DNA of 64,000 bases. Source: Podarcis cretensis. Taxonomy: Eukaryota. Numbering within the stretch: position 1 is the stretch's first letter; each line of letters opens with the position of its first letter. The DNA is taken from the NCBI GenBank assembly GCA_951804945.1, contig OX638155.1, positions 5,394,001 through 5,458,000 of the forward strand, written 5' to 3'. The notes beneath the pieces were generated by a model. That model did no database searches and had not been told where the DNA came from. It saw only the letters and a list, made by a program, of their open reading frames with translations. Made by a program: the position numbers and the translations under genes. Below are positions 1 through 40,456 of the stretch, in pieces.

Positions 1-2312
1 CTAAGAGCTCCAAGCAGTATTTCCAGCTGGATCCTCATTCTGGGGATGTGACAGTAAAGGATAAAATAGATCGGGAGTCCCTGTGTGGTCAGAATGAACC
101 TTGTGTTCTACTCTCTGAAATAGTACTGGAAAAGCCATTGCAGCTACACAGAATTGAAGTTCAGATAGAGGACGTGAATGATAATTCCCCCAAATTCTCT
201 AAAAATCAATTCCTTCTTGAAATACCTGAGCAGACTCCTGTGGATATCAGATTCCCTTTGGAAAGTGCAGAAGATACAGACAAAGGAAAAAATGCTGTTC
301 AGAACTACACCCTTAGTCCTAACGAACATTTTAGGCTGGATGTGCAAAGTCACAGTGATGGTAGCAAATATGCAGAATTGGTGTTAGAGAAATCGCTAGA
401 CCGTGAGGTGAATCCACAGATTTCCCTTATTCTGTCAGCAATTGATGGAGGAATCCCAAAAAGAACTGGAACAGCACAAATAATCATTGATGTTCTGGAT
501 GCTAATGATAATTTGCCTCAGTTTCCACAATCTGAGTACAAAGTGAAACTAAAGGAAAATAGCCCATTGGATACGCTGGTCACCAAAGTTGAAGCCACTG
601 ACAGGGATCTTGGTTTCTATGCACATATCACTTATTCATTCAGCCAAGTGCCAGAAAATGTAGTCAGATTGTTCAAGTTAAACAAATATTCCGGGGAGCT
701 TACTACTGCAGGAAAAATTGATTATGAAGAAAATACAAATTATAAGATGAACATCAGAGCTACAGACGGAGGGGGCCTTTCTGCTTACTGTAAAGTCATT
801 GTAGAGATTGAGGATGAGAACGACAATGCTCCAGAGATTACCATCACATCCATCACCAGTCCCTTACCTGAGGACTCTCCCCCAGACACAGTGGTGGCCC
901 TATTCAGTGTCACAGATGTGGACTCTGGAGACAGTGGCAGAACTGCCTGCACCACTGAAGTCAACCTGCCATTTGTGCTCAAATCCACAGAGAACAACTA
1001 TTACCGGCTGGTGACCCAACAGCCACTGGACAGAGAACAAGCCTCTGAGTATAACATCACCATCACAGCCACGGACAGAGGCTCTCCCAGACTCACTTCC
1101 ACAAGAATACTTCATGTGCAAATCTCAGATGTCAATGACAACCCTCCAGTCTTTGAAAAGCCATTCTATGAAATGCAGTTAAGAGAAAACAATATTCCTG
1201 GTCTTCTGATCAATTCAGTCCATGCTGTTGATCTGGACACAGCGCAGAATGCCAAGGTGACCTACTCGCTTTTGCCTGGGAAGGCCAGTGATGGCCCCAC
1301 ATCCTCTTACATCTCCATCAACTCTGAAACGGGGAACCTGTATGCCATTCGGTCTCTGGATTATGAGGAAGTAAAAGATTTCCAGGTGACGGTGAGGGCT
1401 GTGGATTCAGGTTCCCCTCCACTGAGCTCAGAAGTTCCCATCCGCGTTCAGGTCGTGGATGAAAATGACAATGCCCCCTTCATCCTCTACCCTCTCCAGA
1501 ATGGCACTTCCCCCTCAAATGACCTGGTTCCCCGAGGGGCAGAGACTGGCTACCTGGTCACCAAGGTGGTGGCTGTGGACAGGGATTCTGCGCAGAACTC
1601 TTGGCTTTCCTACCAGCTGCTGAAGGCCACAGAGCCGGGTCTGTTCACGGTGGGGGCCCAGAATGGAGAAGTGACCACCCTGAGGCCGGTCAGCAACCGA
1701 GACAGCTTCAAGCAGAATCTGATTGTGGTGGTCCGAGACAATGGCCATCCTCCCCAGTCCACCTCTGCCACGCTCAGAATCCTGCTAGTGGACGGCTTCT
1801 CTGACCCTTATCTGAAAAGTGTGGCTCTCCCAAAGGAGGAAACAGTGGAGGAGGAAGACCCCAGCCTGACTATGTATCTGATCATCTGCTTGGCTGCCAT
1901 CTCAAGCATCTTTCTCTTTTCTGTGGTGGCGTTTGTTGTCATCAAGTTGCAGAAACGTGAAAAGTTCAAAGGAACTTACAACTCTGGAGCCAATTTCCCG
2001 GTGGGACCTGATTCCCAGGAGATTTCTGCGGATTCTGGTGCTGGATCTCTATCCCAGGCTTACAACTATGAGGTGTGCTTAGCTGGTGGGTCTCTGAACA
2101 GCGAGTTCCGGTTTCTCAGGCCCCTGTTTCCTGTTTTCTCTGTGGAGCCTCCTAACACTCAGCTGAATCCAAGGAGTTCCAATGATTCTGACGGAGTCCC
2201 CAGTCATGCAGGTGAAAGTCAAAACATTATCCAGGTGAGTTCAGCATTTGAATCCTTTGAGCGTGGTTTAATTTCATTTTCTCTCTCTAGTTTGGTCCCC
2301 TTGTATCTGTGA
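1..2312 (+). CDS. PCDHB: Clustered protocadherin beta-type variable exon, class A copy 1 (A1); 5'-truncated by the window edge
   Basis: Frame is open from position 3 (KSSKQYFQLDPHSG...). It has six cadherin repeats (DRE, DxNDN, AxDxG), a TM helix (MYLIICLAAISSIFLFSVVAFVVI) and the beta-type cytoplasmic motif YEVCLAGGSLNSEFRFLRP. Donor CAG|GTGAGT at 2234/2235. Family-level symbol only. Confidence 0.93.
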   Translation, partial: KSSKQYFQLDPHSGDVTVKDKIDRESLCGQNEPCVLLSEIVLEKPLQLHRIEVQIEDVNDNSPKFSKNQFLLEIPEQTPVDIRFPLESAEDTDKGKNAVQNYTLSPNEHFRLDVQSHSDGSKYAELVLEKSLDREVNPQISLILSAIDGGIPKRTGTAQIIIDVLDANDNLPQFPQSEYKVKLKENSPLDTLVTKVEATDRDLGFYAHITYSFSQVPENVVRLFKLNKYSGELTTAGKIDYEENTNYKMNIRATDGGGLSAYCKVIVEIEDENDNAPEITITSITSPLPEDSPPDTVVALFSVTDVDSGDSGRTACTTEVNLPFVLKSTENNYYRLVTQQPLDREQASEYNITITATDRGSPRLTSTRILHVQISDVNDNPPVFEKPFYEMQLRENNIPGLLINSVHAVDLDTAQNAKVTYSLLPGKASDGPTSSYISINSETGNLYAIRSLDYEEVKDFQVTVRAVDSGSPPLSSEVPIRVQVVDENDNAPFILYPLQNGTSPSNDLVPRGAETGYLVTKVVAVDRDSAQNSWLSYQLLKATEPGLFTVGAQNGEVTTLRPVSNRDSFKQNLIVVVRDNGHPPQSTSATLRILLVDGFSDPYLKSVALPKEETVEEEDPSLTMYLIICLAAISSIFLFSVVAFVVIKLQKREKFKGTYNSGANFPVGPDSQEISADSGAGSLSQAYNYEVCLAGGSLNSEFRFLRPLFPVFSVEPPNTQLNPRSSNDSDGVPSHAGESQNIIQVSSAFESFERGLISFSLSSLVPLYL

Positions 2313-10708: not shown

Positions 10709-10712
10709 TTTG

Positions 10713-12478: not shown

Positions 12479-14935
12479 ATGGGAGACGGCTACAGAAAGG
12501 AACAAGGTCTGTATTTTTTGCTTTTCCTTTGTCTTCCTGGAGCACTGAGTATTTCACTTCACTATTCTGTGCCTGAAGAAAAGAAAAGGGGGTCTTTGGT
12601 GGCTAATGTGCTGGAGGATTTGAAACTGGGAACAGGGGAGCTCTCTGCTCGCAGAGCCCAGCTGGTTTCTAAGAACACTAAGCATTATTTTCATCTTGAT
12701 ACCAAGACTGGGAATTTGTTGATAAATGATAAAATAGACCGAGAAACATTATGTGGCCAGACTGATCCTTGCTTATTACAGTCTGAAATAGTGTTGCAAA
12801 ATCCCTTAAAAATCTACAGTATTGAAGTCAAGATAGAAGATGTGAATGATAATGTCCCCAAATTCCCTAAAAAGGCATTTGATCTGGAAATTCCTGAAAA
12901 TGTCTCTCCAAATACACATTTCCCATTGGAATCTGCCCGAGATGAGGACCTGGGGATAAATAACATTCAAAACTACACTCTAAGTCCCAGTGAACATTTC
13001 CGGCTTGATGTTAAAAGTGATGAGGATGGAAACAAGTATGTGGATCTTGTTCTGGAGAAGCCACTGGACAGGGAGAAGGACTCACACTTTGGTCTGACTC
13101 TCACAGCTGTGGATGGAGGGGAGCCACAGAGAACAGGCACAGTTCAAATAAATATTGATGTTCTTGACATCAATGACAATTCCCCACAGTTTACTCATTC
13201 AGAATATAAAGTAAGGTTAAAGGAAAACAGCCCACGGGGCACTCTGGTCTCCAAAGTGGGAGCCACAGATTTGGATTTTGGCTCAAATGCACAGATCACC
13301 TACTCATTCTACAGAGTGCCTGAAGAAATATATGATCTGTTCCACCTAAATGAAATCATGGGGGAAATCACCCTTTCTGGTCAGTTTGATTATGAAAAAG
13401 AAACCAGCTATGGCATGAACATCAGAGCAACAGATGGAGGGGGTCTTTCAGGTCACTGCAAGGTCCTGGTAGATGTCGAAGACGTGAATGACAATGTCCC
13501 TGAAGTGTCCATCATATCCATCACTAGTCCTTTGGCAGAGGATTCTCCCCTGGAGACACTGGTTGCTCTCTTCACTGTCACAGATCAAGACTCTGGAGAC
13601 AATGGCAGAACTCTTTGCTCTGTGGAAGTAAACCTTCCTTTTATGTTAAAACCCACTATGAATAACTATTACCAGCTTGTGGTCCAAAGTCCCTTGGACA
13701 GAGAGAAGGTCTCAGAGTATAATATCACCATCACAGCCGTAGACCAGGGCTCCCCCAGGCTCACTTCAACAAGAATAATTAATGTTCAGATCTCAGATGT
13801 CAATGACAACCCTCCAGTATTTGAAACGTCTTCATGTGAAATGCAGATACGGGAAAACAATATTCCAGGACTGCTCATTGGCTCAGTCCGTGCTGTGGAT
13901 CTGGACACCGAGAAGAATGCCAAGGTCACCTACTCCCTTTTGCCTGGGAAGGTCACTGATGGCCTTGTGGCCTCTTACATCTCGGTCAACTCCGAAAGCG
14001 GAAATCTGTATGCCCTCCGATCTCTGGATTACGAGCAGATCAAAGATTTCACAGTGACGGTGAGGGCTACAGATGGAGGGTCTCCTCCCCTCAGCTCAGA
14101 AGTTACTGTCCGAGTCGTAATCCTAGACGAAAACGACAACGCTCCCTTCTTCCTCTACCCTCTTCAGAACAGCACATCCCCCTGCAATGAGCTGGTGCCC
14201 AAGTCGGTGGAGGCCGGCTATCTGGTCACCAAGGTGGTGGCTGTGGATGGGGATTCTGGCCAGAACTCGTGGCTTTCCTATGAGCTGCTGAAGGCCACAG
14301 ACCCTGGTCTTTTCAGCATAGGAGCCCAGAATGGGGAAGTGAGAACCAGGAGAGCCCTGAGCGAGCGAGACACCAGCAAGCAGAGACTCCTGATAGTGGT
14401 CAGGGACAACGGGCTCCCTCCCCAGAGCAGCACTGCCATGCTCCATGTCCTTCCCGTGGGTGGCTTTTCGGATCCTTATATGAAGGCTGTGGAGGTCAGT
14501 AAAGAGGAGCACGAAGAAGATGGGAGCTTGACCTTGTACTTGGTGATCTGCCTGGCTGCCGTCTCCTTTGTGTTCCTTGTTTGCATTGTTTCCTTTGCTG
14601 CCATCAAGATCTGCAGGAGGGATCCCAGGGAAAGTTTTATCACTGCCCCTCCTCACTTCCCACCTGCCAGACCCGACATCCCAGAGAACTGTGGCGATTC
14701 TCAGAGCGGGTCTCTTTCCAGGAGTTACCACTACGATGTTTGCTTAACCGGTGGGTCCTTGAGCAGCGAGTTCAGATTCCTCAGGCCCCTCATTCCTGTA
14801 TTTTCTGTGGGGGACCCAAACCTCAATGTGAACCAGACCCCTCCTTCTGCTTCCCAAGATATTCCTAATCTGGTGGAAGAAAAAGAATCAGAGAAAAAGG
14901 TGAGGGATTGTGCCAGTGAGTTAACTTGTGATTAA
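12479..14935 (+). CDS. PCDHB: Protocadherin beta-type variable exon, class B copy 2 (B2)
   Basis: 818-aa ORF; signal peptide and EC1 identical to B1; donor AAG|GTGAGG at 14899/14900. Confidence 0.93.
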   Translation: MGDGYRKEQGLYFLLFLCLPGALSISLHYSVPEEKKRGSLVANVLEDLKLGTGELSARRAQLVSKNTKHYFHLDTKTGNLLINDKIDRETLCGQTDPCLLQSEIVLQNPLKIYSIEVKIEDVNDNVPKFPKKAFDLEIPENVSPNTHFPLESARDEDLGINNIQNYTLSPSEHFRLDVKSDEDGNKYVDLVLEKPLDREKDSHFGLTLTAVDGGEPQRTGTVQINIDVLDINDNSPQFTHSEYKVRLKENSPRGTLVSKVGATDLDFGSNAQITYSFYRVPEEIYDLFHLNEIMGEITLSGQFDYEKETSYGMNIRATDGGGLSGHCKVLVDVEDVNDNVPEVSIISITSPLAEDSPLETLVALFTVTDQDSGDNGRTLCSVEVNLPFMLKPTMNNYYQLVVQSPLDREKVSEYNITITAVDQGSPRLTSTRIINVQISDVNDNPPVFETSSCEMQIRENNIPGLLIGSVRAVDLDTEKNAKVTYSLLPGKVTDGLVASYISVNSESGNLYALRSLDYEQIKDFTVTVRATDGGSPPLSSEVTVRVVILDENDNAPFFLYPLQNSTSPCNELVPKSVEAGYLVTKVVAVDGDSGQNSWLSYELLKATDPGLFSIGAQNGEVRTRRALSERDTSKQRLLIVVRDNGLPPQSSTAMLHVLPVGGFSDPYMKAVEVSKEEHEEDGSLTLYLVICLAAVSFVFLVCIVSFAAIKICRRDPRESFITAPPHFPPARPDIPENCGDSQSGSLSRSYHYDVCLTGGSLSSEFRFLRPLIPVFSVGDPNLNVNQTPPSASQDIPNLVEEKESEKKVRDCASELTCD

Positions 14936-15981: not shown

Positions 15982-16237
15982 AAGATATGATGTATAAATG
16001 GTAATGGGGTGGAGACTACATACTGTGAAGGTTGCAGCAGCCTGAAAAAATGTAAACATAATAATTCTGAGAGCAGGATTGAAGTTCCAATGCTTGTATT
16101 CAACTCCTTCATACTCAGAGTAGACCCATGGGAATCATTGATTTAAATGAGTGTACTCCAAGTATGACTTAGCTGCATATAAATCCTACAACCCATATAT
16201 GGTTCCCATTTTAAGGTTTTTCTGATCAGCAGCCAGC

Positions 16238-16580
16238 AGGTGTGCCAACTCTATAGGGCCAAGGTGTCTTCTGCCCCCTCAAAATCTGTTGACAGGGGGC
16301 TAGACCCCCTCAATGTTTAGGCGGCAGAGGAAGTTTAGTGTGGAGCCAAGCATGGCGTAAATTCCTTCTGAGTGTGAGAGAGGTGGAGCTGCCAGCTATT
16401 GAAGCCGCACCACACTGGGCTCCATGCTTTGACTCCTCCTGATGATGCAACGTTGTGCACGAGCTGCACATATGATGTCACACACGAACAATGTGCACCC
16501 GTTGCATGATATCACACGTGCTACATGTGTCATGTGCATGATGTCACACACACACATCATGCAGTGGTGCCCCTCAGTTT
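16238..16580. mobile_element. Degenerate non-autonomous DNA-transposon-like repeat
   Basis: Begins CAGGTGTGCCAACT, the same start as the element at ~62895; internal ATGATGTCAC/GCACA repeats. Confidence 0.4.
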
Positions 16581-16599
16581 TGGGTGCAAGAAGGAAGGT

Positions 16600-17420: not shown

Positions 17421-17590
17421 GGTCTGTACATTTTGTTTCCTATCTCAGGTTCTATAAGTTCTAAAAAGAAAGAAAGCTGGGAATATGGGGTTTATTTCCA
17501 CTGGGGTGGCTGTTCTCTTGCCTCTCCACATGTTTACCAGCTCTTATTCTGGAAAATCTTTTTGTTTTTTGCAACGCCATAACATAGTTC

Positions 17591-17611
17591 AAACACAAGG
17601 TGGTGGTATTG
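17591..17611 (+). promoter_or_regulatory. CSE / CTCF-like promoter element of A3
   Basis: AAACACAAGGTGGTGGTATTG, 230 bp upstream of ATG 17821. Confidence 0.6.
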
Positions 17612-17820
17612 CACAAGATAAAAGAAGGAAATTGGGGAGCAGACAAAGGAATCAGCACAGGAAAAACAGCAGATCCCTATTGCAAGCCAGTCTTCAGAAA
17701 TTCAGTAGGAATAAGCAGGACACAGTGTCACATTCAGAAGATAAAGACAGTTAAGAAGATACACGCCTTGGAATAGACAAGAGGACAATGCTTTGCATTT
17801 CAGGAGGAGAGGCTGGGAGA

Positions 17821-20316
17821 ATGGAAATGCACCTCAAGATCAGGCAAGTTTGGTCTTTTTTCCTGTATCTCTGTGCATGCATAGCAATGTGTGAGTCTTT
17901 CCGCTATTCAGTGGCAGAGGAAAAGAAAAGTGGGTCCCTGGTAGCGAATGTGCTGAAGGATTTGAGAATGGATGCAAAGGAGCTGTCTGCTCGGAGAGCC
18001 CGGCTGGTTTCTAAGAGCTCCAAGCAGTATTTCCAGCTGGATCCTCATTCTGGGGATGTGACAGTAAAGGATAAAATAGATCGGGAGTCCCTGTGTGGTC
18101 AGAATGAACCTTGTGTTCTACTGTCTGAAATTGTGCTGGAAAAGCCATTGCAGCTACACAGAATTGAAGTTCAGATAGAGGACGTGAATGATAATTCCCC
18201 CAAATTCTCCAAGAATCAATTTATTTTTGAAATAGCTGAGCAGACCCCTGTGGATATCAGATTTCCTTTGGAAAGAGCAGAAGATACAGACAAAGGAAAA
18301 AACACAGTTCAGAACTACACCCTTAGTCCTAATGAACATTTTAGGCTTGATGTGAAAAGTCACAGTGATGGTAGCAAACATGCGGAATTGGTGCTGGAGA
18401 AACCGTTGGACCGTGAGGAGAATCCACAGATTGCCCTGATTCTGTCAGCTATTGATGGAGGAATCCCCAAAAGAACTGGAACAGTGCAAATTATTATTGA
18501 TGTTCTGGATGCTAATGATAATTTGCCTCAGTTTCCACAATCTGAGTACAAAGTGAAGCTAATGGAAAATAGCCCATTGGATACACTGGTCACCAAAGTT
18601 GAAGCCACTGACAGGGATCTTGGTTCCTACGCACATATCACTTATTCATTCAGCCAAGTGCCAGAAAATGTTGTCAGATCATTCAAGTTAAACAAATATT
18701 CCGGGGAGCTTACTACTGCAGGAACAATTGATTATGAAGAAAACACAAATTATGAGATGAACATCAGAGCTACGGATGGAGGGGGACTTTCGGCTTACTG
18801 CAAAGTCATTGTAGAGATTGAGGATGAGAACGACAATGCTCCAGAGATTACCATCACTTCCATCACTAGTCCCTTACCTGAGGACTCTCCCCCAGACACA
18901 GTGGTGGCCCTTTTCAGTGTCACAGACATGGACTCCGGGGACAGTGGCAGAACTGCCTGCACCACTGAAGTCAACCTGCCATTTGTGCTCCAACCCACCG
19001 AGAACAACTATTACCAGCTGGTGACCCAACAGCCACTGGACAGAGAACAAGCCTCTGAGTATAACATTACTATCACAGCCACGGACAGAGGCTCTCCCAG
19101 ACTCACTTCCACAAGAATACTTCATGTTGAAGTGTCAGATGTCAATGACAACCCTCCAGTCTTTGAAAAGCCATTCTATGAAATGCAGTTAAGAGAAAAC
19201 AATATTCCTGGTCTTCTGATCAATTCAGTCCATGCTGTTGATCTGGACACAGCGCAGAATGCCAAAGTGACCTACTCACTTTTGCCTGGGAAAGTCAATG
19301 ATGGCCCCACATCCTCTTACATCTCCATCAACTCTGAAACGGGGAACCTGTATGCCATCCGGTCTCTAGATTATGAGGAAGTAAAAAATTTCCATGTGAC
19401 AGTGAGGGCTGTGGATTCAGGTTCCCCTCCACTGAGCTCAGAAGTTCCCATCCGCGTTCAGGTCGTGGATGAAAATGACAATGCCCCCTTCATCCTCTAC
19501 CCTCTCCAGAATGGCACTTCCCCCTCAAATGACCTGGTTCCCCGAGGGGCAGAGACTGGCTACCTGGTCACCAAGGTGGTGGCTGTGGACAGGGATTCTG
19601 CGCAGAACTCTTGGCTTTCCTACCAGCTGCTGAAGGCGACAGAACCGGGTCTGTTCACGGTGGGAGCCCAGAATGGAGAAGTGACCACCCTGAGGCCGGT
19701 CAGCAACCGAGACAGCTTCAAGCAGAATCTGATTGTAGTGGTCCGAGACAACGGCCATCCTCCCCAGTCCACCTCTGCCACGCTCAGAATTCTTCTAGTG
19801 GACGGCTTCTCTGACCCTTATCTGAAAAGTGTGGCTCTCCCAAAGGACGAAACAGTGGAGGAGGAAGACCCCAGCCTGACAATGTATCTGATCATCTGCC
19901 TGGCTGCCATCTCAAGCATCTTTCTCATTTCTGTTGTGGCGTTTGTTGTCATCAAGTTGCAGAAACGTGAAAAGTTCTTAGGAACCTACAACTCTGCAGC
20001 CAATTTCCCGGTGGGACCTGATTCCCAGGAGAACTCTGCGGATTCTGGTGCTGGATCTCTATCCCAGGCTTACAACTATGAGGTGTGCTTAGCTGGTGGG
20101 TCTCTGAACAGCGAGTTCCGGTTTCTCAGGCCCCTGTTTCCTGTTTTCTCTGTGGAGCCTCCTAACACTCAGCTGAATCCAAGGAGTTCCAATGATTCTG
20201 ATGGAGTCCCCAGTCATGCAGGTGAAAGTCAACATGGGGTTCAGGTGAGAATATACTTTTCTTCATTTTTAACATTGCAAGGTATGCATATGATTATTTC
20301 CCTCTCTGTACGATAG
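17821..20316 (+). CDS. PCDHB: Protocadherin beta-type variable exon, class A copy 3 (A3)
   Basis: ORF 17788-20316, likely start ATG 17821; six EC repeats, TM, beta motif; donor CAG|GTGAGA at 20244/20245. Confidence 0.93.
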   Translation: MEMHLKIRQVWSFFLYLCACIAMCESFRYSVAEEKKSGSLVANVLKDLRMDAKELSARRARLVSKSSKQYFQLDPHSGDVTVKDKIDRESLCGQNEPCVLLSEIVLEKPLQLHRIEVQIEDVNDNSPKFSKNQFIFEIAEQTPVDIRFPLERAEDTDKGKNTVQNYTLSPNEHFRLDVKSHSDGSKHAELVLEKPLDREENPQIALILSAIDGGIPKRTGTVQIIIDVLDANDNLPQFPQSEYKVKLMENSPLDTLVTKVEATDRDLGSYAHITYSFSQVPENVVRSFKLNKYSGELTTAGTIDYEENTNYEMNIRATDGGGLSAYCKVIVEIEDENDNAPEITITSITSPLPEDSPPDTVVALFSVTDMDSGDSGRTACTTEVNLPFVLQPTENNYYQLVTQQPLDREQASEYNITITATDRGSPRLTSTRILHVEVSDVNDNPPVFEKPFYEMQLRENNIPGLLINSVHAVDLDTAQNAKVTYSLLPGKVNDGPTSSYISINSETGNLYAIRSLDYEEVKNFHVTVRAVDSGSPPLSSEVPIRVQVVDENDNAPFILYPLQNGTSPSNDLVPRGAETGYLVTKVVAVDRDSAQNSWLSYQLLKATEPGLFTVGAQNGEVTTLRPVSNRDSFKQNLIVVVRDNGHPPQSTSATLRILLVDGFSDPYLKSVALPKDETVEEEDPSLTMYLIICLAAISSIFLISVVAFVVIKLQKREKFLGTYNSAANFPVGPDSQENSADSGAGSLSQAYNYEVCLAGGSLNSEFRFLRPLFPVFSVEPPNTQLNPRSSNDSDGVPSHAGESQHGVQVRIYFSSFLTLQGMHMIISLSVR

Positions 20317-20785: not shown

Positions 20786-23215
20786 ATGAACGATAGCTTC
20801 AGAAAGATGAAAGGTCTGTATCTTTTGCTTCTTCTCTTTGTGTTGAAAGCAGTCTGCATTTCATTTCGCTATTCTGTACCTGAAGAAAAGAAAAAGGGGT
20901 TTTTGGTGGCTAATGTGCTGGAGGATCTGAAACTGGGAAAAGGGGAGCTCTCTGTTCGCAGAGCCCAGCTGGTGTCCAAAAGCACAAAGCAATATTTCCA
21001 CCTTGATACTCACTCTGGGAATTTGCTGATACATGATAAAATAGACAGAGAAGCTTTATGTGGCCAGACTGATCCTTGCATGCTGCTGTCCGAAATTGTG
21101 CTTCAAAACCCCTTAAATATCTACAGTATAGAAATGAAGATAGAAGATGTGAATGACAATACTCCCAAATTCTCTAAAGATAAATTTGATCTGGAAATTC
21201 CAGAGATTGTACCTACAAACACACAGTTCCCCTTGGAATCTGCCCAAGATGAGGACTTAGGAGAAAACAGTATCCAAAACTACACACTCAGTCCCAATGA
21301 GCATTTCCGACTATATGTGAAAAGCAACAAGGATGGAAGGAAATATGTGCATCTTGTTCTGCAGAAGCCACTGGACAGGGAGAATAACTCACACTTTGGA
21401 CTGATCCTCATGGCTGTGGATGGAGGGGTGCCACAGAGAACAGGCACAGTTCAAATAAATATTAATGTTCTTGACAATAATGACAACTTTCCTCTGTTTA
21501 CCCAGCCTGAATACAAAGCTAGGTTAAAAGAAAATAGCCCACAGGGCACTCTGGTCTTCAAAGTGGAAGCCACAGATTTGGATTTTGGTTCGAATGCACA
21601 GATCACCTACTCATTCCACCAGGCACCGGAAAAAATATACAGTTTCTTTTATTTAAATGAAATAAATGGAGAAATCACTCTTTCTGGTCAGCTTGATTAT
21701 GAAAAAGAAACCAGGTATGACATGAACATTAGAGCAATAGATGGAGGGGGTCTTTCAGGTCACTGCAAGGTCCTGGTAGAGATTGAGGATGTGAATGACA
21801 ATGTCCCTGAAGTGTCCGTCATATCCATCACTAGTCCTTTGGCAGAGGATTCTCCCCTGGAGACACTTGTGGCTCTCTTCAGTGTCGCAGACCGAGACTC
21901 CGGAGACAATGGCAGAACTCTGTGCTCTGTGGAAGTAAACCTTCCTTTTATGTTAAAACCCAGTATGAATAACTATTACCAGCTTGTGGTCCAAAGTCCC
22001 TTGGACAGAGAGAAGGTCCCGGAATATAATATCACCATCACAGCCGTAGACCAAGGCTCCCCCAGGCTCACTTCAACAAGAATAATTAATGTTCAGATCT
22101 CAGATATCAATGACAACCCTCCAGTATTTGAAAAGTCTTCATGTGAAATGCAGATACGGGAAAACAATATTCCAGGACTGCTCATTGGCTCAGTCCGTGC
22201 TGCTGATCTGGACACCGAGAAGAATGCCAAGGTCACCTACTCCCTTTTGCCTGGGAAGGTCACTGATGGCCTTGTGGCCTCTTACATCTCAGTCAACTCT
22301 GAAAGCGGAAATCTGTATGCCCTCCGATCTCTGGATTATGAGCAGATCAAAGATTTCACAGTGACGGTGAGGGCTACAGATGGAGGGTCTCCTCCCCTCA
22401 GCTCAGAAGTTACTGTCCGAGTCATAATCCTAGACGAAAACGACAACGCTCCCTTCTTCCTCTACCCTCTTCAGAACAGCACATCCCCCTGCAATGAGCT
22501 GGTGCCCAAGTCGGTGGAGGCCGGCTACCTGGTCACCAAGGTGGTGGCTGTGGATGGAGATTCTGGCCAGAACTCGTGGCTTTCCTATGAGCTGCTGAAG
22601 GCCACAGACCCTGGTCTTTTCAGCATAGGAGCCCAGAATGGGGAAGTGAGAACCAGGAGAGCCCTGAGCGAGCGAGACACCAGCAAGCAGAGACTCCTGA
22701 TAGTGGTCAGGGACAACGGGCTCCCTCCCCAGAGCAGCACTGCCATGCTCCATGTCCTTCCCGTGGGTGGCTTTTCGGATCCTTATATGAAGGCTGTGGA
22801 GGTCAGTAAAGAGGAGCACGAAGAAGATGGGACCTTGACCTTGTATTTGGTGATCTGCCTGGCTGCCGTCTCCTTTGTGTTCCTTGTTTGCATTGTTTCC
22901 TTTGCTGCCATCAAGATCTGCAGGAGGGATCCCAGGGAAAGTTTTATCGCTGCCCCTCCTCACTTCCCACCTGCCAGACCCGACATCCCAGAGAACTGTG
23001 GTGATTCTCAGAGCGGGTCTCTTTCCAGGAGTTACCACTACGATGTTTGCTTAACCGGTGGGTCCTTGAGCAGCGAGTTCAGGTTCCTCAGGCCCCTCAT
23101 TCCTGTTTTTTCTGTGGGGGACCCAAACCTCAATGTGAACCAGACCCCTCCTTCTGCTTCCCAAGATATTCCTGATGCTTTGGAGAGCAGGAAGCCAATG
23201 GAACAGGTGAGATAA
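20786..23215 (+). CDS. PCDHB: Protocadherin beta-type variable exon, class B copy 3 (B3)
   Basis: 809-aa ORF, start context ACCATGA; donor CAG|GTGAGA at 23206/23207. Confidence 0.93.
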   Translation: MNDSFRKMKGLYLLLLLFVLKAVCISFRYSVPEEKKKGFLVANVLEDLKLGKGELSVRRAQLVSKSTKQYFHLDTHSGNLLIHDKIDREALCGQTDPCMLLSEIVLQNPLNIYSIEMKIEDVNDNTPKFSKDKFDLEIPEIVPTNTQFPLESAQDEDLGENSIQNYTLSPNEHFRLYVKSNKDGRKYVHLVLQKPLDRENNSHFGLILMAVDGGVPQRTGTVQININVLDNNDNFPLFTQPEYKARLKENSPQGTLVFKVEATDLDFGSNAQITYSFHQAPEKIYSFFYLNEINGEITLSGQLDYEKETRYDMNIRAIDGGGLSGHCKVLVEIEDVNDNVPEVSVISITSPLAEDSPLETLVALFSVADRDSGDNGRTLCSVEVNLPFMLKPSMNNYYQLVVQSPLDREKVPEYNITITAVDQGSPRLTSTRIINVQISDINDNPPVFEKSSCEMQIRENNIPGLLIGSVRAADLDTEKNAKVTYSLLPGKVTDGLVASYISVNSESGNLYALRSLDYEQIKDFTVTVRATDGGSPPLSSEVTVRVIILDENDNAPFFLYPLQNSTSPCNELVPKSVEAGYLVTKVVAVDGDSGQNSWLSYELLKATDPGLFSIGAQNGEVRTRRALSERDTSKQRLLIVVRDNGLPPQSSTAMLHVLPVGGFSDPYMKAVEVSKEEHEEDGTLTLYLVICLAAVSFVFLVCIVSFAAIKICRRDPRESFIAAPPHFPPARPDIPENCGDSQSGSLSRSYHYDVCLTGGSLSSEFRFLRPLIPVFSVGDPNLNVNQTPPSASQDIPDALESRKPMEQVR

Positions 23216-24057: not shown

Positions 24058-24126
24058 TTCTCTTCTCTTCTCTTCTCTTCTCTTCTCTTCTCTTCTCTTC
24101 TCTTCTCTTCTCTTCTCTTCTCTTCT
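24058..24126. repeat. (TCTTC)n pentanucleotide microsatellite
   Basis: Direct reading, about 13 units. Confidence 0.95.
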
Positions 24127-26645: not shown

Positions 26646-26756
26646 TTTACTAATGGAATTTCAATTCCTGAATCTCTGTGAATTTACTAATGGAATTTCA
26701 ATTCCTGAATCTCTGTGAATTTACTAATGGAATTTCAATTCCTGAGTCTCTGTGAA
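26646..26756. repeat. 37-bp tandem repeat, three copies
   Basis: TTTACTAATGGAATTTCAATTCCTGAATCTCTGTGAA three times with one mismatch. Confidence 0.95.
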
Positions 26757-27062
26757 TGGAACTGTGAACTTTCTGATGATAGGTCTAGATGAGGGCTGGA
26801 CATCTTCATGGTTTTCCCTGGGCATCCTAAACATTATCAGATGAAGAGGGACCTTAAAGATCAGTGTTCATCTTACACTTCTTTTTCCTTGGTCTCCCTG
26901 CACACCTTAAATAGTCATGGCAATGTTGTTCTATTCATATTCTAAACATCTCACTGAGTTTTATGGTGAAGAAATGTGTTTGTGTGTATGTATGAGTATA
27001 ATTATTTACTGTTTATAAAATGTAAATGTAACAGGCATTAAATATCGAAGAATATTCTATGC

Positions 27063-27785: not shown

Positions 27786-30233
27786 ATGAAAACCCTCCAT
27801 TATAGCAGGCAAGTTTGTCTCTTCTTTATCTGTCTCTGTACCTGTGGTGTGGTGTGTGAGTCCTTCCGCTATTCAGTGCCTGAGGAAAAGAAAAGTGGGT
27901 CTCTGGTGGCTAATCTGCTGAAAGATTTGAAAATGGAGGTAAAGGAGCTGTCTGCTCGGAGAGCGCAGCTGCTTTCTAAGACTGCCAAGCAGTATTTTGA
28001 GCTGGATCCCCAGTCTGGGGATGTGATAATAAAAGATAAAATAGACCGGGAGTCCCTGTGTGTTCAGAATGACCCTTGTGTTCTGCTTTGTGAAATGGTG
28101 CTGGAAAAGCCATGGCAGCTGCACAGAATTGAGATTCAAATAGAAGACGTGAATGATAATTCCCCCAGATTCTCTGAAAAACAATTTGTCTTGGAAATAC
28201 CTGAGCAGACACCCACAAATACCCGATTCATTTTGGAAAAAGCTCAAGATTCAGACAAAGGACAAAATGCTGTTCAGAACTATACTCTTAGTCCAAATGA
28301 ACATTTTAGACTGGATGTGGAAAGTCACACTGATGGTAGCAAATATGCAGAACTGGTATTAGAAAAGCCTTTGGACCGTGAGGAGAAGCCACAGGTTGCA
28401 TTAATGCTGTCAGCTGTTGATGGAGGGATCCCAAGAAGAAGCGGAAGTACACAAATTATTGTTCGGGTTCTGGACACCAATGACAATGCTCCTCACTTTA
28501 ATAAATCTGTATATAATGTTCAACTACTGGAAAACCTTCCACCAGGTACACTGGTCACCAAAGTTGAAGCCACAGACAGGGATCTTGGTTCCTACGCACA
28601 TATCACTTATTCATTCAGCCAAGGGTCAGAAAATGTGTTGAGAATGTTCAAGTTAAATAAACACACCGGGGAGCTTACTACTGCGGCAACAATCGATTAT
28701 GAAGAAAACACAAATTATGAGATGAACATCAGAGCTACAGATGGAGGGGGCCTTTCTGCTTACTGCAAAGTCATTGTAGAGATTGAGGATGAGAACGACA
28801 ATGCTCCAGAGATTACCATCACATCCATCACCAGTCCCTTACCTGAGGACTCTCCCCCAGACACAGTGGTGGCCCTCTTCAGTGTCACAGATGTGGACTC
28901 TGGAGACAGTGGCAGAACTGCCTGCACCACTGAAGTAAACCTGCCATTTGTGCTCAAACCCACCGAGAACAACTATTACCGGCTGGTGACCCAACAGCCA
29001 CTGGACAGAGAACAAGCCTCTGAGTATAACATCACCATCACAGCCACGGACAGGGGCTCCCCCAGACTCACTTCCACAAGAATACTTCATGTTGAAGTGT
29101 CAGATGTCAATGACAACCCTCCAGTGTTTGAAAAGCCATTCTATGAAATGCAGTTAAGGGAAAACAATATTCCTGGTCTTCTGATCAATTCAGTCCATGC
29201 TGTTGATCTGGACACAGCGCAGAATGCCAAAGTGACCTACTCGCTTTTTCCTGGGAAGGTCAATGATGGCCCCACATCCTCTTACATCTCCATCAACTCT
29301 GAAACGGGGAACCTGTATGCCATCCGGTCTCTGGATTATGAGGAAGTAAAAGATTTCCAGGTGACGGTGAGGGCTGTGGATTCAGGTTCCCCTCCACTGA
29401 GCTCAGAAGTTCCCATCCGCGTTCAGGTCGTGGATGAAAATGACAATGCCCCCTTCATCCTCTACCCTCTCCAGAATGGCACTTCCCCCTCAAATGACCT
29501 GGTTCCCCGAGGGGCAGAGACTGGCTACCTGGTCACCAAGGTGGTGGCTGTGGACAGGGATTCTGGCCAGAACTCTTGGCTTTCCTACCAGCTGCTGAAG
29601 GCCACAGAACCGGGTCTGTTCACGGTGGGGGCCCAGAATGGAGAAGTGACCACCCTCAGGCCGGTCAGCAACCGAGACAGCTTCAAGCAGAATCTGATTG
29701 TGGTGGTCCGAGACAACGGCCATCCTCCCCAGTCCACCTCTGCCACGCTCAGAATCCTGCTAGTGGACAGCTTCTCTGACCCTTATCTGAAAAGTGTGGC
29801 TCTCCCAAAGGAGGAAACCGTGGAGGAGGAAGACCCCAGCCTGACGATGTATCTGATCATCTGCCTGGCTGCCATCTCATGCATCTTTCTCATTTCTGTT
29901 GTGGCGTTTGTTGTCATCAAGTTGCAGAAACGTGAAAAGTTCATAGGAACCTACAACTCTGCAGCCAATTTCCCGGTGGGACCTGATTCCCAGGAGAACT
30001 CTGCGGATTCTGGTGCTGGATCTCTATCCCAGGCTTACAACTATGAGGTGTGCTTAGCTGGTGGGTCTCTGAACAGCGAGTTCCGGTTTCTCAGGCCCCT
30101 GTTTCCTGTTTTCTCTGTGGAGCCTCCTAACACTCAGCTGAATCCAAGGAGTTCCAGTGGGTCCCAAGAAGTGCCTTGTAATGAAGAAGAAACGCGTCTG
30201 AGATGTCAGGTGAGGATAATTAGTATAATATGA
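27786..30233 (+). CDS. PCDHB: Protocadherin beta-type variable exon, class A copy 4 (A4)
   Basis: The ORF track starts at a non-ATG codon (27570); first ATG is 27786 (MKTLHYSRQV signal peptide); donor CAG|GTGAGG at 30209/30210. Confidence 0.93.
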   Translation: MKTLHYSRQVCLFFICLCTCGVVCESFRYSVPEEKKSGSLVANLLKDLKMEVKELSARRAQLLSKTAKQYFELDPQSGDVIIKDKIDRESLCVQNDPCVLLCEMVLEKPWQLHRIEIQIEDVNDNSPRFSEKQFVLEIPEQTPTNTRFILEKAQDSDKGQNAVQNYTLSPNEHFRLDVESHTDGSKYAELVLEKPLDREEKPQVALMLSAVDGGIPRRSGSTQIIVRVLDTNDNAPHFNKSVYNVQLLENLPPGTLVTKVEATDRDLGSYAHITYSFSQGSENVLRMFKLNKHTGELTTAATIDYEENTNYEMNIRATDGGGLSAYCKVIVEIEDENDNAPEITITSITSPLPEDSPPDTVVALFSVTDVDSGDSGRTACTTEVNLPFVLKPTENNYYRLVTQQPLDREQASEYNITITATDRGSPRLTSTRILHVEVSDVNDNPPVFEKPFYEMQLRENNIPGLLINSVHAVDLDTAQNAKVTYSLFPGKVNDGPTSSYISINSETGNLYAIRSLDYEEVKDFQVTVRAVDSGSPPLSSEVPIRVQVVDENDNAPFILYPLQNGTSPSNDLVPRGAETGYLVTKVVAVDRDSGQNSWLSYQLLKATEPGLFTVGAQNGEVTTLRPVSNRDSFKQNLIVVVRDNGHPPQSTSATLRILLVDSFSDPYLKSVALPKEETVEEEDPSLTMYLIICLAAISCIFLISVVAFVVIKLQKREKFIGTYNSAANFPVGPDSQENSADSGAGSLSQAYNYEVCLAGGSLNSEFRFLRPLFPVFSVEPPNTQLNPRSSSGSQEVPCNEEETRLRCQVRIISII

Positions 30234-30786: not shown

Positions 30787-33219
30787 ATGAAAGACTGCAT
30801 CAGGAACAGGCAAGGTCTGTATCTCTTCATCTTATTCTCTGTGTCTAGAGTGATGTGTATCTCAATACGTTATTCTGTGCCTGAAGAAAAGAAAAGTGGA
30901 TTTCTGGTGGCTAATATGCTGAAGGATTTGAAACTGGGAACAGGGGAGCTCTCTGCTCGCAGAGCCCAGCTAGTGTCCGAAAGCACAAAGCAATATTTCC
31001 ACCTTGATACCCACACTGGGAATCTGCTGATAAATGATAAAGTAGACAGGGAAGCTTTGTGTGGTGAGACTGATCCTTGCTTGCTGCTCTCTGAAATTGT
31101 GCTTCAAAACCCCTTAAAGATCTACAGTATAGAAATGGAGATAAAAGATGTAAATGACAATACTCCCAAATTCTCAAAAAAGGAATTCAAGATAGATATT
31201 CCAGAGAATGTCCCTATCAATACCCAATTCCCTTTGGAATCTGCACAAGATACAGATTTGGATAAAAATAGCATCCAAAACTACACTCTCAGTTCCAATG
31301 AGCATTTCTGGCTCCAAGTAAAAAGTGATGAAAGTGGAAACAAATATTTGGACCTTGTTTTGGTGAAACCTCTAGATAGGGAAGAAGCAGCGGAGTTTGG
31401 ACTGACTCTCACAGCTGTGGATGGAGGGGAGCCACAGAGAACAGGCACAGTTCAGATAAATATCAAGGTTTTGGACATCAATGATAATTTCCCTCAGTTT
31501 ACTCATTCTGAATATAAAGTAAGGTTAAAGGAAAACAGCCCTAGGGACACCCTGGTCTCCAAAGTAGAAGCCAGAGATTCAGATTTTGGTTCAAATGCAC
31601 GAATAACATACTCATTTGATCGGGTACCTGAAAAAATACACCGTTGCTTCCACTTAAATGATCTCACTGGGGAAATAACTGTTTTGGGACAAATAGATTA
31701 TGAAAAAGAAACCAGCTACAGCATGAGCATCAGGGCAACAGATGGAGGGGGTCTTTCAGGTCACTGCAAGGTCCTGGTAGAGATTGAAGACGTGAATGAC
31801 AATGTCCCTGAAGTGTCCGTCATATCCATCACTAGTCCTTTGGCAGAGGATTCTCCCCTGGAGACACTTGTGGCTCTCTTCAGTGTCGCAGACCGAGACT
31901 CCGGAGACAATGGCAGAACCGTGTGCTCTGCGGAGGCGAACCTTCCTTTTATGTTAAAACCCACTATGAATAACTATTACCAGCTTGTGGTCCAAAGTCC
32001 CTTGGACAGAGAGAAGGTCTCAGAGTATAATATCACCATCACAGCCGTTGACCAGGGCTCCCCCAAGCTCACTTCAACAAGAATTCTTAACGTTCAGATC
32101 TCTGATGTCAACGACAACCCTCCAGTATTTGAAAAGTCTTCATGTGAAATGCAGATACGGGAAAACAATATTCCAGGACTGCTCATTGGCTCAGTCCGTG
32201 CTGCTGATCTGGACACCGAGAAGAATGCCAAGGTCACCTACTCCCTTTTGGCTGGGAAGGTCACTGATGGCCTTGTGGCCTCTTACATCTCGGTCAACTC
32301 TGAAAGCGGAAATCTGTATGCCCTCCGATCTCTGGATTACGAGCAGATCAAAGATTTCACAGTGACGGTGAGGGCTACAGATGGAGGGTCTCCTCCCCTC
32401 AGCTCTGAAGTTACTGTCCGAGTCGTAATCCTAGACGAAAACGACAACGCTCCCTTCTTCCTCTACCCTCTTCAGAACAGCACATCCCCCTGCAATGAGC
32501 TGGTGCCCAAGTCGGTGGAGGCCGGCTACCTGGTCACCAAGGTGGTGGCTGTGGATGGAGATTCTGGCCAGAACTCGTGGCTTTCCTATGAGCTGCTGAA
32601 GGCCACAGACCCTGGTCTTTTCAGCATAGGAGCCCAGAATGGGGAAGTGAGAACCAGGAGAGCCCTGAGCGAGCGAGACACCAGCAAGCAGAGACTCCTG
32701 ATAGTGGTCAGGGACAACGGGCTCCCTCCCCAGAGCAGCACTGCCATGCTCCATGTCCTTCCCGTGGGTGGCTTTTCGGATCCTTATATGAAGGCTGTGG
32801 AGGTCAGTAAAGAGGAGCACGAAGAAGATGGGAGCTTGACCTTGTACTTGGTGATCTGCCTGGCTGCCGTCTCCTTTGTGTTCCTTGTTTGCATTGTTTC
32901 CTTTGCTGCCATCAAGATCTGCAGGAGGGATCCCAGGGAAAGTTTTATCGCTGCCCCTCCTCACTTCCCACCTGCCAGACCCGACATCCCAGAGAACTGT
33001 GGCGATTCTCAGAGCGGGTCTCTTTCCAGGAGTTACCACTATGATGTGTGCTTAACCGGTGGGTCCTTGAGCAGCGAGTTCAGGTTCCTCAGGCCCCTCA
33101 TTCCTGTTTTTTCTGTGGGGGACCCAAACCTCAATGTGAACCAGACCCCTCCTTCTGCTTCCCAAGATATTCCTGACCAGGCGGGGAAAACAGAATCAGG
33201 GAAAGAGGTGAGCAATTAG
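30787..33219 (+). CDS. PCDHB: Protocadherin beta-type variable exon, class B copy 4 (B4)
   Basis: First ATG 30787 (ACCATGA; MKDCIRNRQG); six EC repeats, TM, beta motif; donor GAG|GTGAGC at 33207/33208. Confidence 0.93.
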   Translation: MKDCIRNRQGLYLFILFSVSRVMCISIRYSVPEEKKSGFLVANMLKDLKLGTGELSARRAQLVSESTKQYFHLDTHTGNLLINDKVDREALCGETDPCLLLSEIVLQNPLKIYSIEMEIKDVNDNTPKFSKKEFKIDIPENVPINTQFPLESAQDTDLDKNSIQNYTLSSNEHFWLQVKSDESGNKYLDLVLVKPLDREEAAEFGLTLTAVDGGEPQRTGTVQINIKVLDINDNFPQFTHSEYKVRLKENSPRDTLVSKVEARDSDFGSNARITYSFDRVPEKIHRCFHLNDLTGEITVLGQIDYEKETSYSMSIRATDGGGLSGHCKVLVEIEDVNDNVPEVSVISITSPLAEDSPLETLVALFSVADRDSGDNGRTVCSAEANLPFMLKPTMNNYYQLVVQSPLDREKVSEYNITITAVDQGSPKLTSTRILNVQISDVNDNPPVFEKSSCEMQIRENNIPGLLIGSVRAADLDTEKNAKVTYSLLAGKVTDGLVASYISVNSESGNLYALRSLDYEQIKDFTVTVRATDGGSPPLSSEVTVRVVILDENDNAPFFLYPLQNSTSPCNELVPKSVEAGYLVTKVVAVDGDSGQNSWLSYELLKATDPGLFSIGAQNGEVRTRRALSERDTSKQRLLIVVRDNGLPPQSSTAMLHVLPVGGFSDPYMKAVEVSKEEHEEDGSLTLYLVICLAAVSFVFLVCIVSFAAIKICRRDPRESFIAAPPHFPPARPDIPENCGDSQSGSLSRSYHYDVCLTGGSLSSEFRFLRPLIPVFSVGDPNLNVNQTPPSASQDIPDQAGKTESGKEVSN

Positions 33220-37770: not shown

Positions 37771-37987
37771 CACAGCACATATTCTTAAAGAAAAGATTAA
37801 TGTTTGGAAAGCATAGACAAGGGCAAAACAATCTGGAAGCAAAAGAGATACAGTTCTTCATTGCAAAAAAATCAGGAGGAGGGAGACAGCAGTATGCATT
37901 TTCAGGAATAAATACAGCAAAGGGATACAGCTAAGTACAACAACATATTTTTCTGTTGTTCAATCTGTCTTGAGTGAATCTGGAACA

Positions 37988-40456
37988 ATGGAAATGAATA
38001 ACTGGAACAGGCAAGTGACTTTTTTCTTTCTGTCTCTCTGCATGTATGGGGCAATATGCAATTCCATCCAATATTCAGTGCCAGAGGAAAGGAAAACAGG
38101 GTCTCTGGTGGCTAATGTGCTGAAAGATTTGAAAGTGGATGTAAAGAACCTTTCTGCTCGGAGAGCCCGGCTGGTTTCTAAGAGCACCAAGCAGTATTTC
38201 CAGCTGGATCCCCATTCTGGGGATTTGATATTAAAGGATAGAATAGATCGAGAGGCTCTCTGTGGTCAGAATGACCATTGTGTTCTGCTCTCTGAAATTG
38301 TGCTAGAAGATCCATTGAAGCTATATATAATTGAAGTTCAAATAGAGGATGTGAATGATAATTCCCCCAAATTCTCTAAAGATCAATTTATTTTTGAAAT
38401 ACCTGAGCAAACTCACATAAATACTGTATTCCCTTTGGAGAGAGCTCAAGATTCAGACAAAGGAAAAAATACTATTCAGAATTACACGCTTAGTCCTAAT
38501 AAGTATTTTAGGTTGGATGTGCAGAGTCACAGTGATGGTACTAAATATGCAGACCTAGTACTGGAGAAACCATTAGACCGTGAGGTGGAAGCACAGCTTT
38601 TCCTAATTCTGTCAGCTGCTGATGGAGGAATACCCCACAAAACTGGAACAGCACAAATCATCATAGATGTTCTGGACAACAATGATAATGCTCCTCTATT
38701 TAATAAATCCGTGTACCAGGAAAAACTGATGGAAAACAGCCCATTGGGTACATTAGTCACAAGAGTTGAAGCCAGAGACAAGGATATTGGTTCCAATGCT
38801 GAAATCACTTACTCATTTAGCCAAGTGCCAGAAAATGTGCAGAGATCATTCAGGTTAAATAAAAATACTGGGGAACTTACTATCTCAGGTATAATTGATT
38901 ATGAAGAAAGCTCAAATTATGAAATAAAAATCAGAGCTACAGATGGAGGGGGCCTTTCTGCTTACTGTAAAGTTATTGTAGAGATTGAGGATGAGAACGA
39001 CAATGCTCCAGAGATTACCATCACATCCATCACCAGTCCCTTACCTGAAGACTCTCCCCCAGACACAGTGGTGGCCCTCTTCAGTGTCACAGATGTGGAC
39101 TCTGGAGACAGTGGCAGAACTGCCTGCACCACTGAAGTAAACCTGCCATTTGTACTAAGACCGACGGAGAACAACTATTACCAGCTGGTAACCCAACAGC
39201 CACTGGACAGAGAACAAGCCTCTGAGTATAACATCACCATCACAGCCACAGACAGGGGCTCTCCCAGACTCACTTCCACAAGAATACTTCATGTTCAAAT
39301 CTCAGATGTCAATGACAACCCTCCAGCGTTTGAAAAGCCATTCTATGAAATGCAGTTAAGAGAAAACAATATTCCAGGTCTTCTGATCAATTCGGTCCAT
39401 GCTGTTGATCTGGACACAGCGCAGAATGCCAAAGTGACCTACTCGCTTTTGCCTGGGAAGGTCAATGATGGCCCCACATCCTCTTACATCTCCATCAACT
39501 CTGAAACGGGGAACCTGTATGCCATCCGGTCTCTGGATTATGAGGAAGTAAAAGATTTCCAGGTGACGGTGAGGGCTGTGGATTCAGGTTCCCCTCCACT
39601 GAGCTCAGAAGTTCCCATCCGCGTTCAGGTTGTGGATGAAAATGACAATGCCCCCTTCATCCTCTACCCTCTCCAGAATGGCACTTCCCCCTCAAATGAC
39701 CTGGTTCCCCGAGGGGCAGAGACTGGCTACCTGGTCACCAAGGTGGTGGCTGTGGACAGGGATTCTGCGCAGAACTCTTGGCTTTCCTACCAGCTGCTGA
39801 AGGCCACAGAACCGGGTCTGTTCACGGTGGGGGCCCAGAATGGAGAAGTGACCACCCTGAGGCCGGTCAGCAACCGAGACAGCTTCAAGCAGAATCTGAT
39901 TGTGGTGGTCCGAGACAATGGCCAACCTCCCCAGTCCACCTCTGCCACGCTCAGAATCCTGCTAGTGGACGGCTTCTCTGACCCTTATCTGAAAAGTGTG
40001 GCTCTCCCAAAGGACGAAACAGTGGAGGAGGAAGACCCCAGCCTGACAATGTATTTGATCATCTGCCTGGCTGCCATCTCAAGCATCTTTCTCATTTCCG
40101 TAGTGGCGTTTGTTGTCATCAAGTTGCAGAAACGTGAAAAGTTCATAGGAACCTACAACTCCGCAGCCAATTTCCCGGTGGGACCTGATTCCCAGGAGAA
40201 CTCTGTGGATCCTGGTGCTGGATCTCTATCCCAGGCTTACAACTATGAGGTGTGCTTAGCTGGTGGGTCTCTGAACAGCGAGTTCAGGTTTCTCAGGCCC
40301 CTGTTTCCTGTTTTCTCTGTGGAGCCTCCTAACACTCAGCTGAATCCAAGGAGTTCCAATGATTCTGAAGGTGTAGCCGGTCATGCAGGTGAAAGTCAAC
40401 ATGGGGTTCAGGTGAGAACACTGTTGGGAATTTGTTTTCTAATATTTAATTTTTAA
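37988..40456 (+). CDS. PCDHB: Protocadherin beta-type variable exon, class A copy 5 (A5); last beta gene
   Basis: First ATG 37988 (MEMNNWNRQV); six EC repeats, TM, beta motif; donor CAG|GTGAGA at 40411/40412. Confidence 0.93.
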   Translation: MEMNNWNRQVTFFFLSLCMYGAICNSIQYSVPEERKTGSLVANVLKDLKVDVKNLSARRARLVSKSTKQYFQLDPHSGDLILKDRIDREALCGQNDHCVLLSEIVLEDPLKLYIIEVQIEDVNDNSPKFSKDQFIFEIPEQTHINTVFPLERAQDSDKGKNTIQNYTLSPNKYFRLDVQSHSDGTKYADLVLEKPLDREVEAQLFLILSAADGGIPHKTGTAQIIIDVLDNNDNAPLFNKSVYQEKLMENSPLGTLVTRVEARDKDIGSNAEITYSFSQVPENVQRSFRLNKNTGELTISGIIDYEESSNYEIKIRATDGGGLSAYCKVIVEIEDENDNAPEITITSITSPLPEDSPPDTVVALFSVTDVDSGDSGRTACTTEVNLPFVLRPTENNYYQLVTQQPLDREQASEYNITITATDRGSPRLTSTRILHVQISDVNDNPPAFEKPFYEMQLRENNIPGLLINSVHAVDLDTAQNAKVTYSLLPGKVNDGPTSSYISINSETGNLYAIRSLDYEEVKDFQVTVRAVDSGSPPLSSEVPIRVQVVDENDNAPFILYPLQNGTSPSNDLVPRGAETGYLVTKVVAVDRDSAQNSWLSYQLLKATEPGLFTVGAQNGEVTTLRPVSNRDSFKQNLIVVVRDNGQPPQSTSATLRILLVDGFSDPYLKSVALPKDETVEEEDPSLTMYLIICLAAISSIFLISVVAFVVIKLQKREKFIGTYNSAANFPVGPDSQENSVDPGAGSLSQAYNYEVCLAGGSLNSEFRFLRPLFPVFSVEPPNTQLNPRSSNDSEGVAGHAGESQHGVQVRTLLGICFLIFNF

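Follow-up and report, generated by a model that had tools for sequence, protein, structure and literature searches.

A shared terminal exon probably serves the protocadherin beta exons of squamate reptiles

A variable exon of the clustered protocadherins (Pcdh) encodes a signal peptide, six extracellular cadherin (EC) repeats, a transmembrane segment and a short variable cytoplasmic domain. The window analyzed here, a stretch of 64,000 nucleotides (nt) from contig OX638155.1 of the lizard Podarcis cretensis, contains eleven long open reading frames (ORFs) of such exons on the plus strand, nine of them beta (b1 to b9) and two gamma-A (g1 and g2) (Table 1). Pfam recognized a Cadherin_2 domain, five Cadherin stretches and a Cadherin_C_2 domain in each exon tested, including b2 and b3 with ORFs of 807 and 819 amino acids (aa), so that each ORF is a single large exon with the protocadherin variable-region architecture. 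The encoded proteins are 93-96% identical to Podarcis gene models, and b8 starts with the ATG at 30787 rather than with the TTG given in the ORF listing. In the clustered protocadherin locus of a lacertid lizard, the window covers the 3' part of the beta subcluster and reaches into the beginning of the gamma subcluster. Between the two arrays lies a short exon to which, as we argue below, the beta exons are probably spliced.

Table 1. Exons and splice features of the window (a caret marks an exon border)
Feature	Positions	Strand	Remarks
b1, type-A beta variable exon	1..2234	+	5' end cut by window start; donor CAG^GTGAGT at 2235
b2, type-B beta variable exon, 807 aa	3351..5771	+	donor AAG^GTGAAA at 5772, weakest of nine
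b3, type-A beta variable exon, 819 aa	8204..10660	+	donor CAG^GTGAGA at 10661
b4, type-B beta variable exon	12479..14899	+	donor AAG^GTGAGG at 14900
b5, type-A beta variable exon	17788..20244	+	donor CAG^GTGAGA at 20245
b6, type-B beta variable exon	20786..23206	+	donor CAG^GTGAGA at 23207
b7, type-A beta variable exon	27786..30209	+	donor CAG^GTGAGG at 30210
b8, type-B beta variable exon	30787..33207	+	donor GAG^GTGAGC at 33208
b9, type-A beta variable exon, last of array	37988..40411	+	donor CAG^GTGAGA at 40412
3' splice site of tail exon, cacttttttatgtcctttgcag^	42914..42933	+	from coding sequence of DNAPFxLYPLQ (EC5/EC6 linker)
Beta-specific terminal "mini-constant" (tail) exon, 39 codons ARASLSEDTAPRSGAPGCIVNQATGANINCGQNDWLTYQ and TAG, phase 0	42934..43053	+	relic of first 39 EC6 codons
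Candidate 3' untranslated region, to first AATAAA (44105-44110)	43054..44110	+	putative 3' end; GT-rich stretch after
g1, first gamma-A variable exon	50520..53033	+	donor CAG^GTGAGT at 53034, phase 0
g2, gamma-A variable exon	56356..58773	+	donor CAG^GTATGT at 58774, phase 0

The beta exons belong to two types, A (b1, b3, b5, b7 and b9; 84-95% mutual pairwise identity) and B (b2, b4, b6 and b8; 87-95%), which are about 64% identical to each other and about 42% identical to g1 or g2; the two gamma exons share 62%. The types strictly alternate, forming 4.5 copies of a two-gene unit (A then B) of about 10 kilobases (kb) across positions 1-40411. Assignment to beta or gamma was made from pairwise scores and identities. 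Against mouse EC1-4 constructs from the PDB, the scores were 417-427 bits for Pcdhb8 and Pcdhb6, 390-407 for gamma and 360-386 for alpha; among the EC1-3 constructs, Pcdhb1 was the best match to the beta-like exons. In these comparisons of equal-length constructs both types matched mouse Pcdhb6, b8 and b1 best, with a lead of 15-40 bits over gamma, while the control exon g2 matched gamma-A1 and A8 best, with a lead of more than 60 bits. The anole beta proteins of Jiang et al. 2009 (PMC2764143) were 71-76% identical to type B, 59-63% to type A and 42-44% to the gamma exons. Together with the PDB scores and the g2 control, these identities uphold the labels beta and gamma-A. The array lies directly upstream of the gamma-A exons at 50520 and 56356, and its alpha side is beyond the window; in the anole, the beta subcluster is positioned between alpha and gamma (PMC2764143). 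The 3' parts of the type-A exons are homogenized, with the five copies 99-100% identical over positions -150 to -61 from the donor, and the sequence right after the donor is unalignable even between copies with 95% protein identity. This pattern looks like gene conversion confined to coding DNA.

An earlier note on this DNA had proposed that all nine beta exons end in a splice donor, and that these donors routinely join the constant exons of the gamma subcluster. The account of the exon ends was borne out in every particular. The nine donors lie exactly where the note had placed them (Table 1), with GT between codons, and they share their phase with the gamma donors (phase 0 in 11/11); a single phase throughout the beta exons (9/9) is also what units of the alpha and gamma type require. 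Eight of the nine beta donors read GTGAG, b2 reading GTGAAA, and a rough log-odds score places the donors between the 96th and 99.9th percentiles of all 3347 plus-strand GT. In the four type-B genes the donor stands 2421 nt after the ATG, the last codon starting at +2418, and yet the codons just ahead of it are free to vary. Mean pairwise identity among paralogues is 98-100% from -150 to -61, drops to 70-76% over the last 30 exonic nt (the last ten codons), returns to 90-100% at +1 to +5 and is about 50%, the random level, from +6 onward. Past the donor the ORFs run on for 2-25 unconserved codons, which differ in number and sequence even between 95%-identical copies. Judged by this identity profile, the donor is a conserved island that marks where the exon truly ends, kept by selection while both of its flanks change. 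The note had also suggested a comparison across squamates: in gene models that run on, the first codons past the junction mostly encode V-R, V-S, V-K or V-C, corresponding to GTNAGN, GTNAAN or GTNTGY, and the donor is therefore conserved in orthologues. With GTGAG kept and the run-on sequence at random level, it is the donor rather than the stop codon that forms the conserved functional end, which argues that the beta exons are not single-exon genes of the mammalian kind.

Such single-exon genes are what the literature describes. Mammalian Pcdh-beta genes consist of one exon and have no constant domain (Vanhalst 2001; Hirano 2012, PMC3431597; review PMC7811963), and both a Xenopus paper and the 2020 review (PMC7811963) treat beta genes as single-exon genes. 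The anole beta genes were defined by phylogeny only and stated to be without a constant region, run-on ORFs were deposited for them, and splicing from variable to constant exons was confirmed only for delta, alpha and gamma, by reverse transcription PCR (RT-PCR) (Jiang et al. 2009, PMC2764143). The lizard genes could accordingly resemble the mammalian ones, the main product reading through the donor to the run-on stop and being polyadenylated locally, with any spliced form minor or spurious and spread by annotation pipelines. Mouse beta mRNAs are indeed unspliced and polyadenylated (PMC3431597), and run-on models of 805-822 aa are found in every species, the anole proteins of 2009 among them. 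We nevertheless consider this reading unlikely, since copies that are 95% identical differ in their run-on codons while GTGAG stays and the last ten codons are free; conservation further downstream, described below, also speaks against it.

We next turned to squamate gene models. A protein word search with b6 yielded squamate proteins by the thousand, and 216 squamate proteins from the searches as a whole were fetched and inspected; the variable exons of the window and the tail described here were searched separately. The C-termini of the beta matches form two classes. Run-on models (805-822 aa) end in ...EQ^VR and a stop, as do the ORFs of the window, and tail-joined models (840-858 aa), named protocadherin beta-16-like isoform X1 to X17, have the variable exon cut exactly at the window's donor and followed by a shared tail. 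In Podarcis this tail reads ARASLSEDAAPRSGAPGC(T/I)(V/A)NQATGANINC(G/S)QNDWLTYQ. It is carried by 101 of the 216 proteins, which come from at least 21 species and from both RefSeq and Ensembl/UniProt. Word searches limited to the tail region, a method that needs shared 5-mers, returned 13 and 58 proteins, all of them squamate. Both subtypes are joined to the tail in Podarcis muralis, P. raffonei, Lacerta agilis and Zootoca vivipara, type-A models passing through ...GESQHGVQ^ARASL to a length of 847 or 858 aa and type-B models having 846 aa; b6 itself is 95% identical to a tail-bearing P. muralis model (P0006). In models from Anolis carolinensis (isoform X12, P0207), Gekko japonicus (P0100) and Hemicordylus (P0200, P0203), the beta exon is followed instead by other short downstream exons, for example ...KEQ^GPSYDEHQLPTSEFLD, which suggests that alternative terminal exons may exist beside the 39-aa tail.

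The window contains the exon that encodes this tail. A tblastn search with the shared squamate tail gave a single match, at 42931-43050, with an E value of 4e-24. The border of the exon reads ttttttatgtcctttgcag^GCC; the exon opens with GCC AGA GCA after the tract given in Table 1 and runs for 39 codons to a TAG at 43051-43053. Its acceptor, at 42933^42934, is in phase 0 and so matches the beta donors. On an ad hoc score this acceptor ranks first among the 689 AG that lie past the last beta donor and ahead of the first gamma exon (40412-50519), and first among the 4708 AG of the whole window. The exon lies 2.5 kb past the last beta donor, 40.7 kb past the b1 donor and 7.5 kb ahead of the first gamma exon. 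The first AATAAA after it is at 44105 and is followed by a GT-rich stretch; the locus thus has, as in alpha- and gamma-type units, a shared downstream exon with a phase-matched acceptor, a stop and a candidate 3' untranslated region. None of the sequencing runs listed in a run search was recorded as RNA; words sampled from 42934-44130 were contained to 41-51% in 17 small contig sets guessed to be RNA, which is suggestive only. The tail encoded in the window differs at two residues from the tails of both P. muralis and P. raffonei.

These results bear directly on the proposed joining of beta exons to the gamma constant exons. The common phase 0 of beta and gamma donors means that such a join would be in frame, and Tasic et al. 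2002 reportedly described low-level splicing between clusters in mammals. The gamma constant domain adds about 125 aa, for an expected length of about 930 aa. No such length or C-terminus was found among the 216 fetched squamate beta-like models, against 101 that join the tail exon, and lacertid matches to the beta query measured 810-858 aa. Moreover, the beta donors are followed within 2.5-41 kb, ahead of the gamma constant exons, by the first-ranked acceptor with its stop and a polyadenylation (poly(A)) signal, and in mouse neither a beta-gamma nor a beta-alpha constant product was detected by RT-PCR (PMC3431597). The note was right, then, that the donor is a real exon end and that the genes are not single-exon genes of the mammalian kind, but the target that it named is not supported, the more likely one by far being the tail exon at 42934-43053. 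Its inference that beta and gamma form one splicing unit is very unlikely to be correct, although a beta-to-gamma-constant join may occur as a minor product. With nearly half of the models joined to the tail, none joined to gamma and the tail exon placed between the two arrays, the beta subcluster looks like a splicing unit of its own.

The tail is widely distributed among squamates. It was found in Lacertoidea (Podarcis muralis, P. raffonei, Lacerta, Zootoca, Salvator and Rhineura), Anguimorpha (Elgaria), Iguania (two Anolis species, Sceloporus and Pogona), Serpentes (Protobothrops), Scincoidea (Tiliqua and Hemicordylus) and Gekkota (Heteronotia, Euleptes, Eublepharis, Sphaerodactylus and Paroedura), lineages whose divergence spans roughly 200 million years. 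Nearly every species has a tail of 39 aa (Rhineura has 36 and Eublepharis 40), and the tail always ends in DWLxY(Q/H). Across species, with b9 left out of the comparison, the identity of the tail to the copy in the window follows variable-exon identity: 95% and 93%, respectively, in Podarcis, 74% and 75% in Anolis, 72% and 72% in Tiliqua, 62% and 75% in Heteronotia, and 56% and 71% in Protobothrops. Were the genes functionally single-exon, the tail would be a neutral relic, and a neutral relic would not retain a 39-codon frame, a stop and an acceptor across the major squamate lineages at about the rate of the variable exons. A phmmer search with the tail against 1.84 billion representatives found one true tail, a 74-aa ORF entering from the intron, on a Logan contig of 2258 nt; all other matches were EC6 starts of long cadherins, in a search of low power that is uninformative on outgroups.

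The tail exon owes its sequence to a dead variable exon. In frame, it matches the stretch of the live variable exons that encodes residues ~566-606, namely the first 39 codons of EC6, with a Smith-Waterman score of 82 against 31 +/- 4 for shuffled sequences (0/1000 reaching it). Within the 10 kb between the beta and gamma arrays, likeness to variable exons remains only at 42916-43068, so the one surviving piece of the dead exon coincides with the annotated tail exon. The coding sequence of the EC5/EC6 linker, DNAPF(I/F)LYPLQ, is cccttcatcctctaccctctCAG in all live exons. This is a run of pyrimidines with CAG behind it, and every live variable exon thereby holds a latent 3' splice site at this linker (1467-1499, 5007-5039, 9893-9925, 14135-14167, 19477-19509, 22442-22474, 29442-29474 and 32443-32475). 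The tail acceptor translates as FLCPLQ^ARASL, and the TAG of the tail stands in place of the Leu of ...SYQL. On this sequence evidence, the tail exon is the fossilized remnant of the first 39 EC6 codons of a dead variable exon, and its acceptor is a direct descendant of the pyrimidine-rich stretch encoding the ...PFxLYPLQ linker. In models from Tiliqua (P0078) and Crotalus horridus (P0007), the end of a beta exon is joined to EC6-like sequence, and the latent linker site may therefore be subject to cryptic use or repeated exonization.

This ancestry also raises the question of whether the junction is an annotation artifact, a scrap of pseudogene joined to beta exons by predictors that had no transcripts to support it. 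The tail exon is indeed a pseudogene relic, and the evidence for the junction comes entirely from predicted models. There are, however, no curated proteins from which homology-based prediction alone could have taken this tail, and two pipelines give the same junction. The frame, the length, the stop and the first-ranked acceptor have been kept across squamates while the rest of the dead exon vanished. An artifact of this kind thus seems scarcely credible.

Several observations weigh against splicing of the beta exons to the tail. The junction is seen in predicted gene models, which are not fully independent between species, and no transcript contigs were found among the members of the protein clusters, all of which were genome-derived models. 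The same annotations contain run-on single-exon models, such as that of the P. raffonei orthologue of b4, and a few models join the same beta donors to other acceptors. The b2 donor is weak, the 39-aa tail peptide has no recognized motif, and AATAAA or ATTAAA hexamers lie 38-750 nt past every donor, making local polyadenylation possible. Such hexamers are, however, just as frequent behind the gamma donors, whose splicing is certain, and their counts do not separate beta from gamma. Taking both sides together, we think it likely that squamate beta exons are spliced to their own shared terminal exon, on the basis of gene models, conservation and splice-site anatomy, and we infer that the beta-to-tail junction is the main product in vivo.

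These data suggest a model for expression of the beta subcluster. As in the alpha and gamma clusters, transcription would start at a chosen promoter, here a beta promoter, and continue across the beta exons that lie downstream, and the donor of the first, cap-proximal beta exon would then join the tail acceptor. This join would add a common 39-aa C-terminus and a stop codon, and the transcript would probably end at a putative poly(A) site about 1 kb further on. The beta subcluster would in this way form a separate unit with both variable and constant parts, kept apart from the gamma constant exons. How beta exons lost their splicing to gamma constant exon 1 is left open in the 2020 review (PMC7811963). 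We tentatively suggest, as a possibility that we rate below even chances by some distance, that the tail is a selected 39-residue "beta constant domain": a dead variable exon at the border between beta and gamma would have been exonized through its latent EC5/EC6-linker acceptor, its capture with a stop and a poly(A) site would have cut beta off from the gamma constant exons and created an independent beta cluster, and the donors as well as the exon would afterwards have disappeared in mammals. If true, this scenario would decide between the two origin scenarios that the review leaves open.

RefSeq and Ensembl models already include the beta-to-tail junction, though with no comment on it, and it is not a new sequence object. 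No published description of a beta constant exon in reptiles was found among the searchable literature, and among described features of the protocadherin locus the tail exon appears to be new. The beta cluster is presented in reviews, and in the one study of reptiles, as lacking a constant exon, each beta exon being a single-exon gene. Should the splicing proposed here prove routine, the beta proteins of about 11,000 species of reptiles would share a cytoplasmic end that mammals lack, and the absence of constant exons from beta would be a mammalian trait rather than a feature of the family. Such splicing would also provide a testable mechanism of insulation, in which an acceptor within a dead variable exon, being closer than the downstream constant region, captures a block of variable exons and so draws it away from that region.

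Other features of the window were also recorded. The last 35 residues of the type-A exons (for example at 10560-10660) include ...VEPPNTQLNPRSSNDSDG..., a string that recalls PPNTDWRFS, which we take to be the start of the gamma constant domain, whose exons lie outside the window. The spacer between b6 and b7 contains a (TTCTC)14 microsatellite at 24058-24127 and a 37-nt sequence repeated three times in tandem at 26646-26757. Guanine-cytosine (GC) skew is strongly positive (0.26) at 16001-18000, in the spacer ahead of b5.

Compared with known systems, the lizard array shares with mammalian Pcdh-beta the architecture of one large exon (Cadherin_2, five Cadherin, Cadherin_C_2) and the position immediately upstream of the gamma variable exons. 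Unlike mammalian beta genes, which are single exons with no constant exon, the lizard exons each have a conserved in-frame donor (mostly strong, weak in b2) and, in the 101 predicted models, a shared terminal exon that follows the array. With Pcdh-alpha and Pcdh-gamma they have in common tandem variable exons with donors of one phase, followed by shared downstream sequence with a matching acceptor, a stop and a 3' untranslated region. The lizard beta constant part is, however, one exon of 39 codons instead of three exons encoding about 125-150 aa, and it is not homologous to the alpha and gamma constant exons but derived from the start of EC6. The beta subcluster of Anolis carolinensis (Jiang et al. 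2009, PMC2764143) resembles the beta exons of the window in sequence, and the current RefSeq anole models (isoforms X1-X12) carry the tail, unlike the proteins of 2009. Finally, as in other terminal exons exonized from pseudogenes or relics, a dead copy has supplied a latent acceptor, an open frame and a stop that follows a nonsense change; the captured lizard exon differs from these in serving a whole array of alternative first exons and in being conserved across an order of reptiles.

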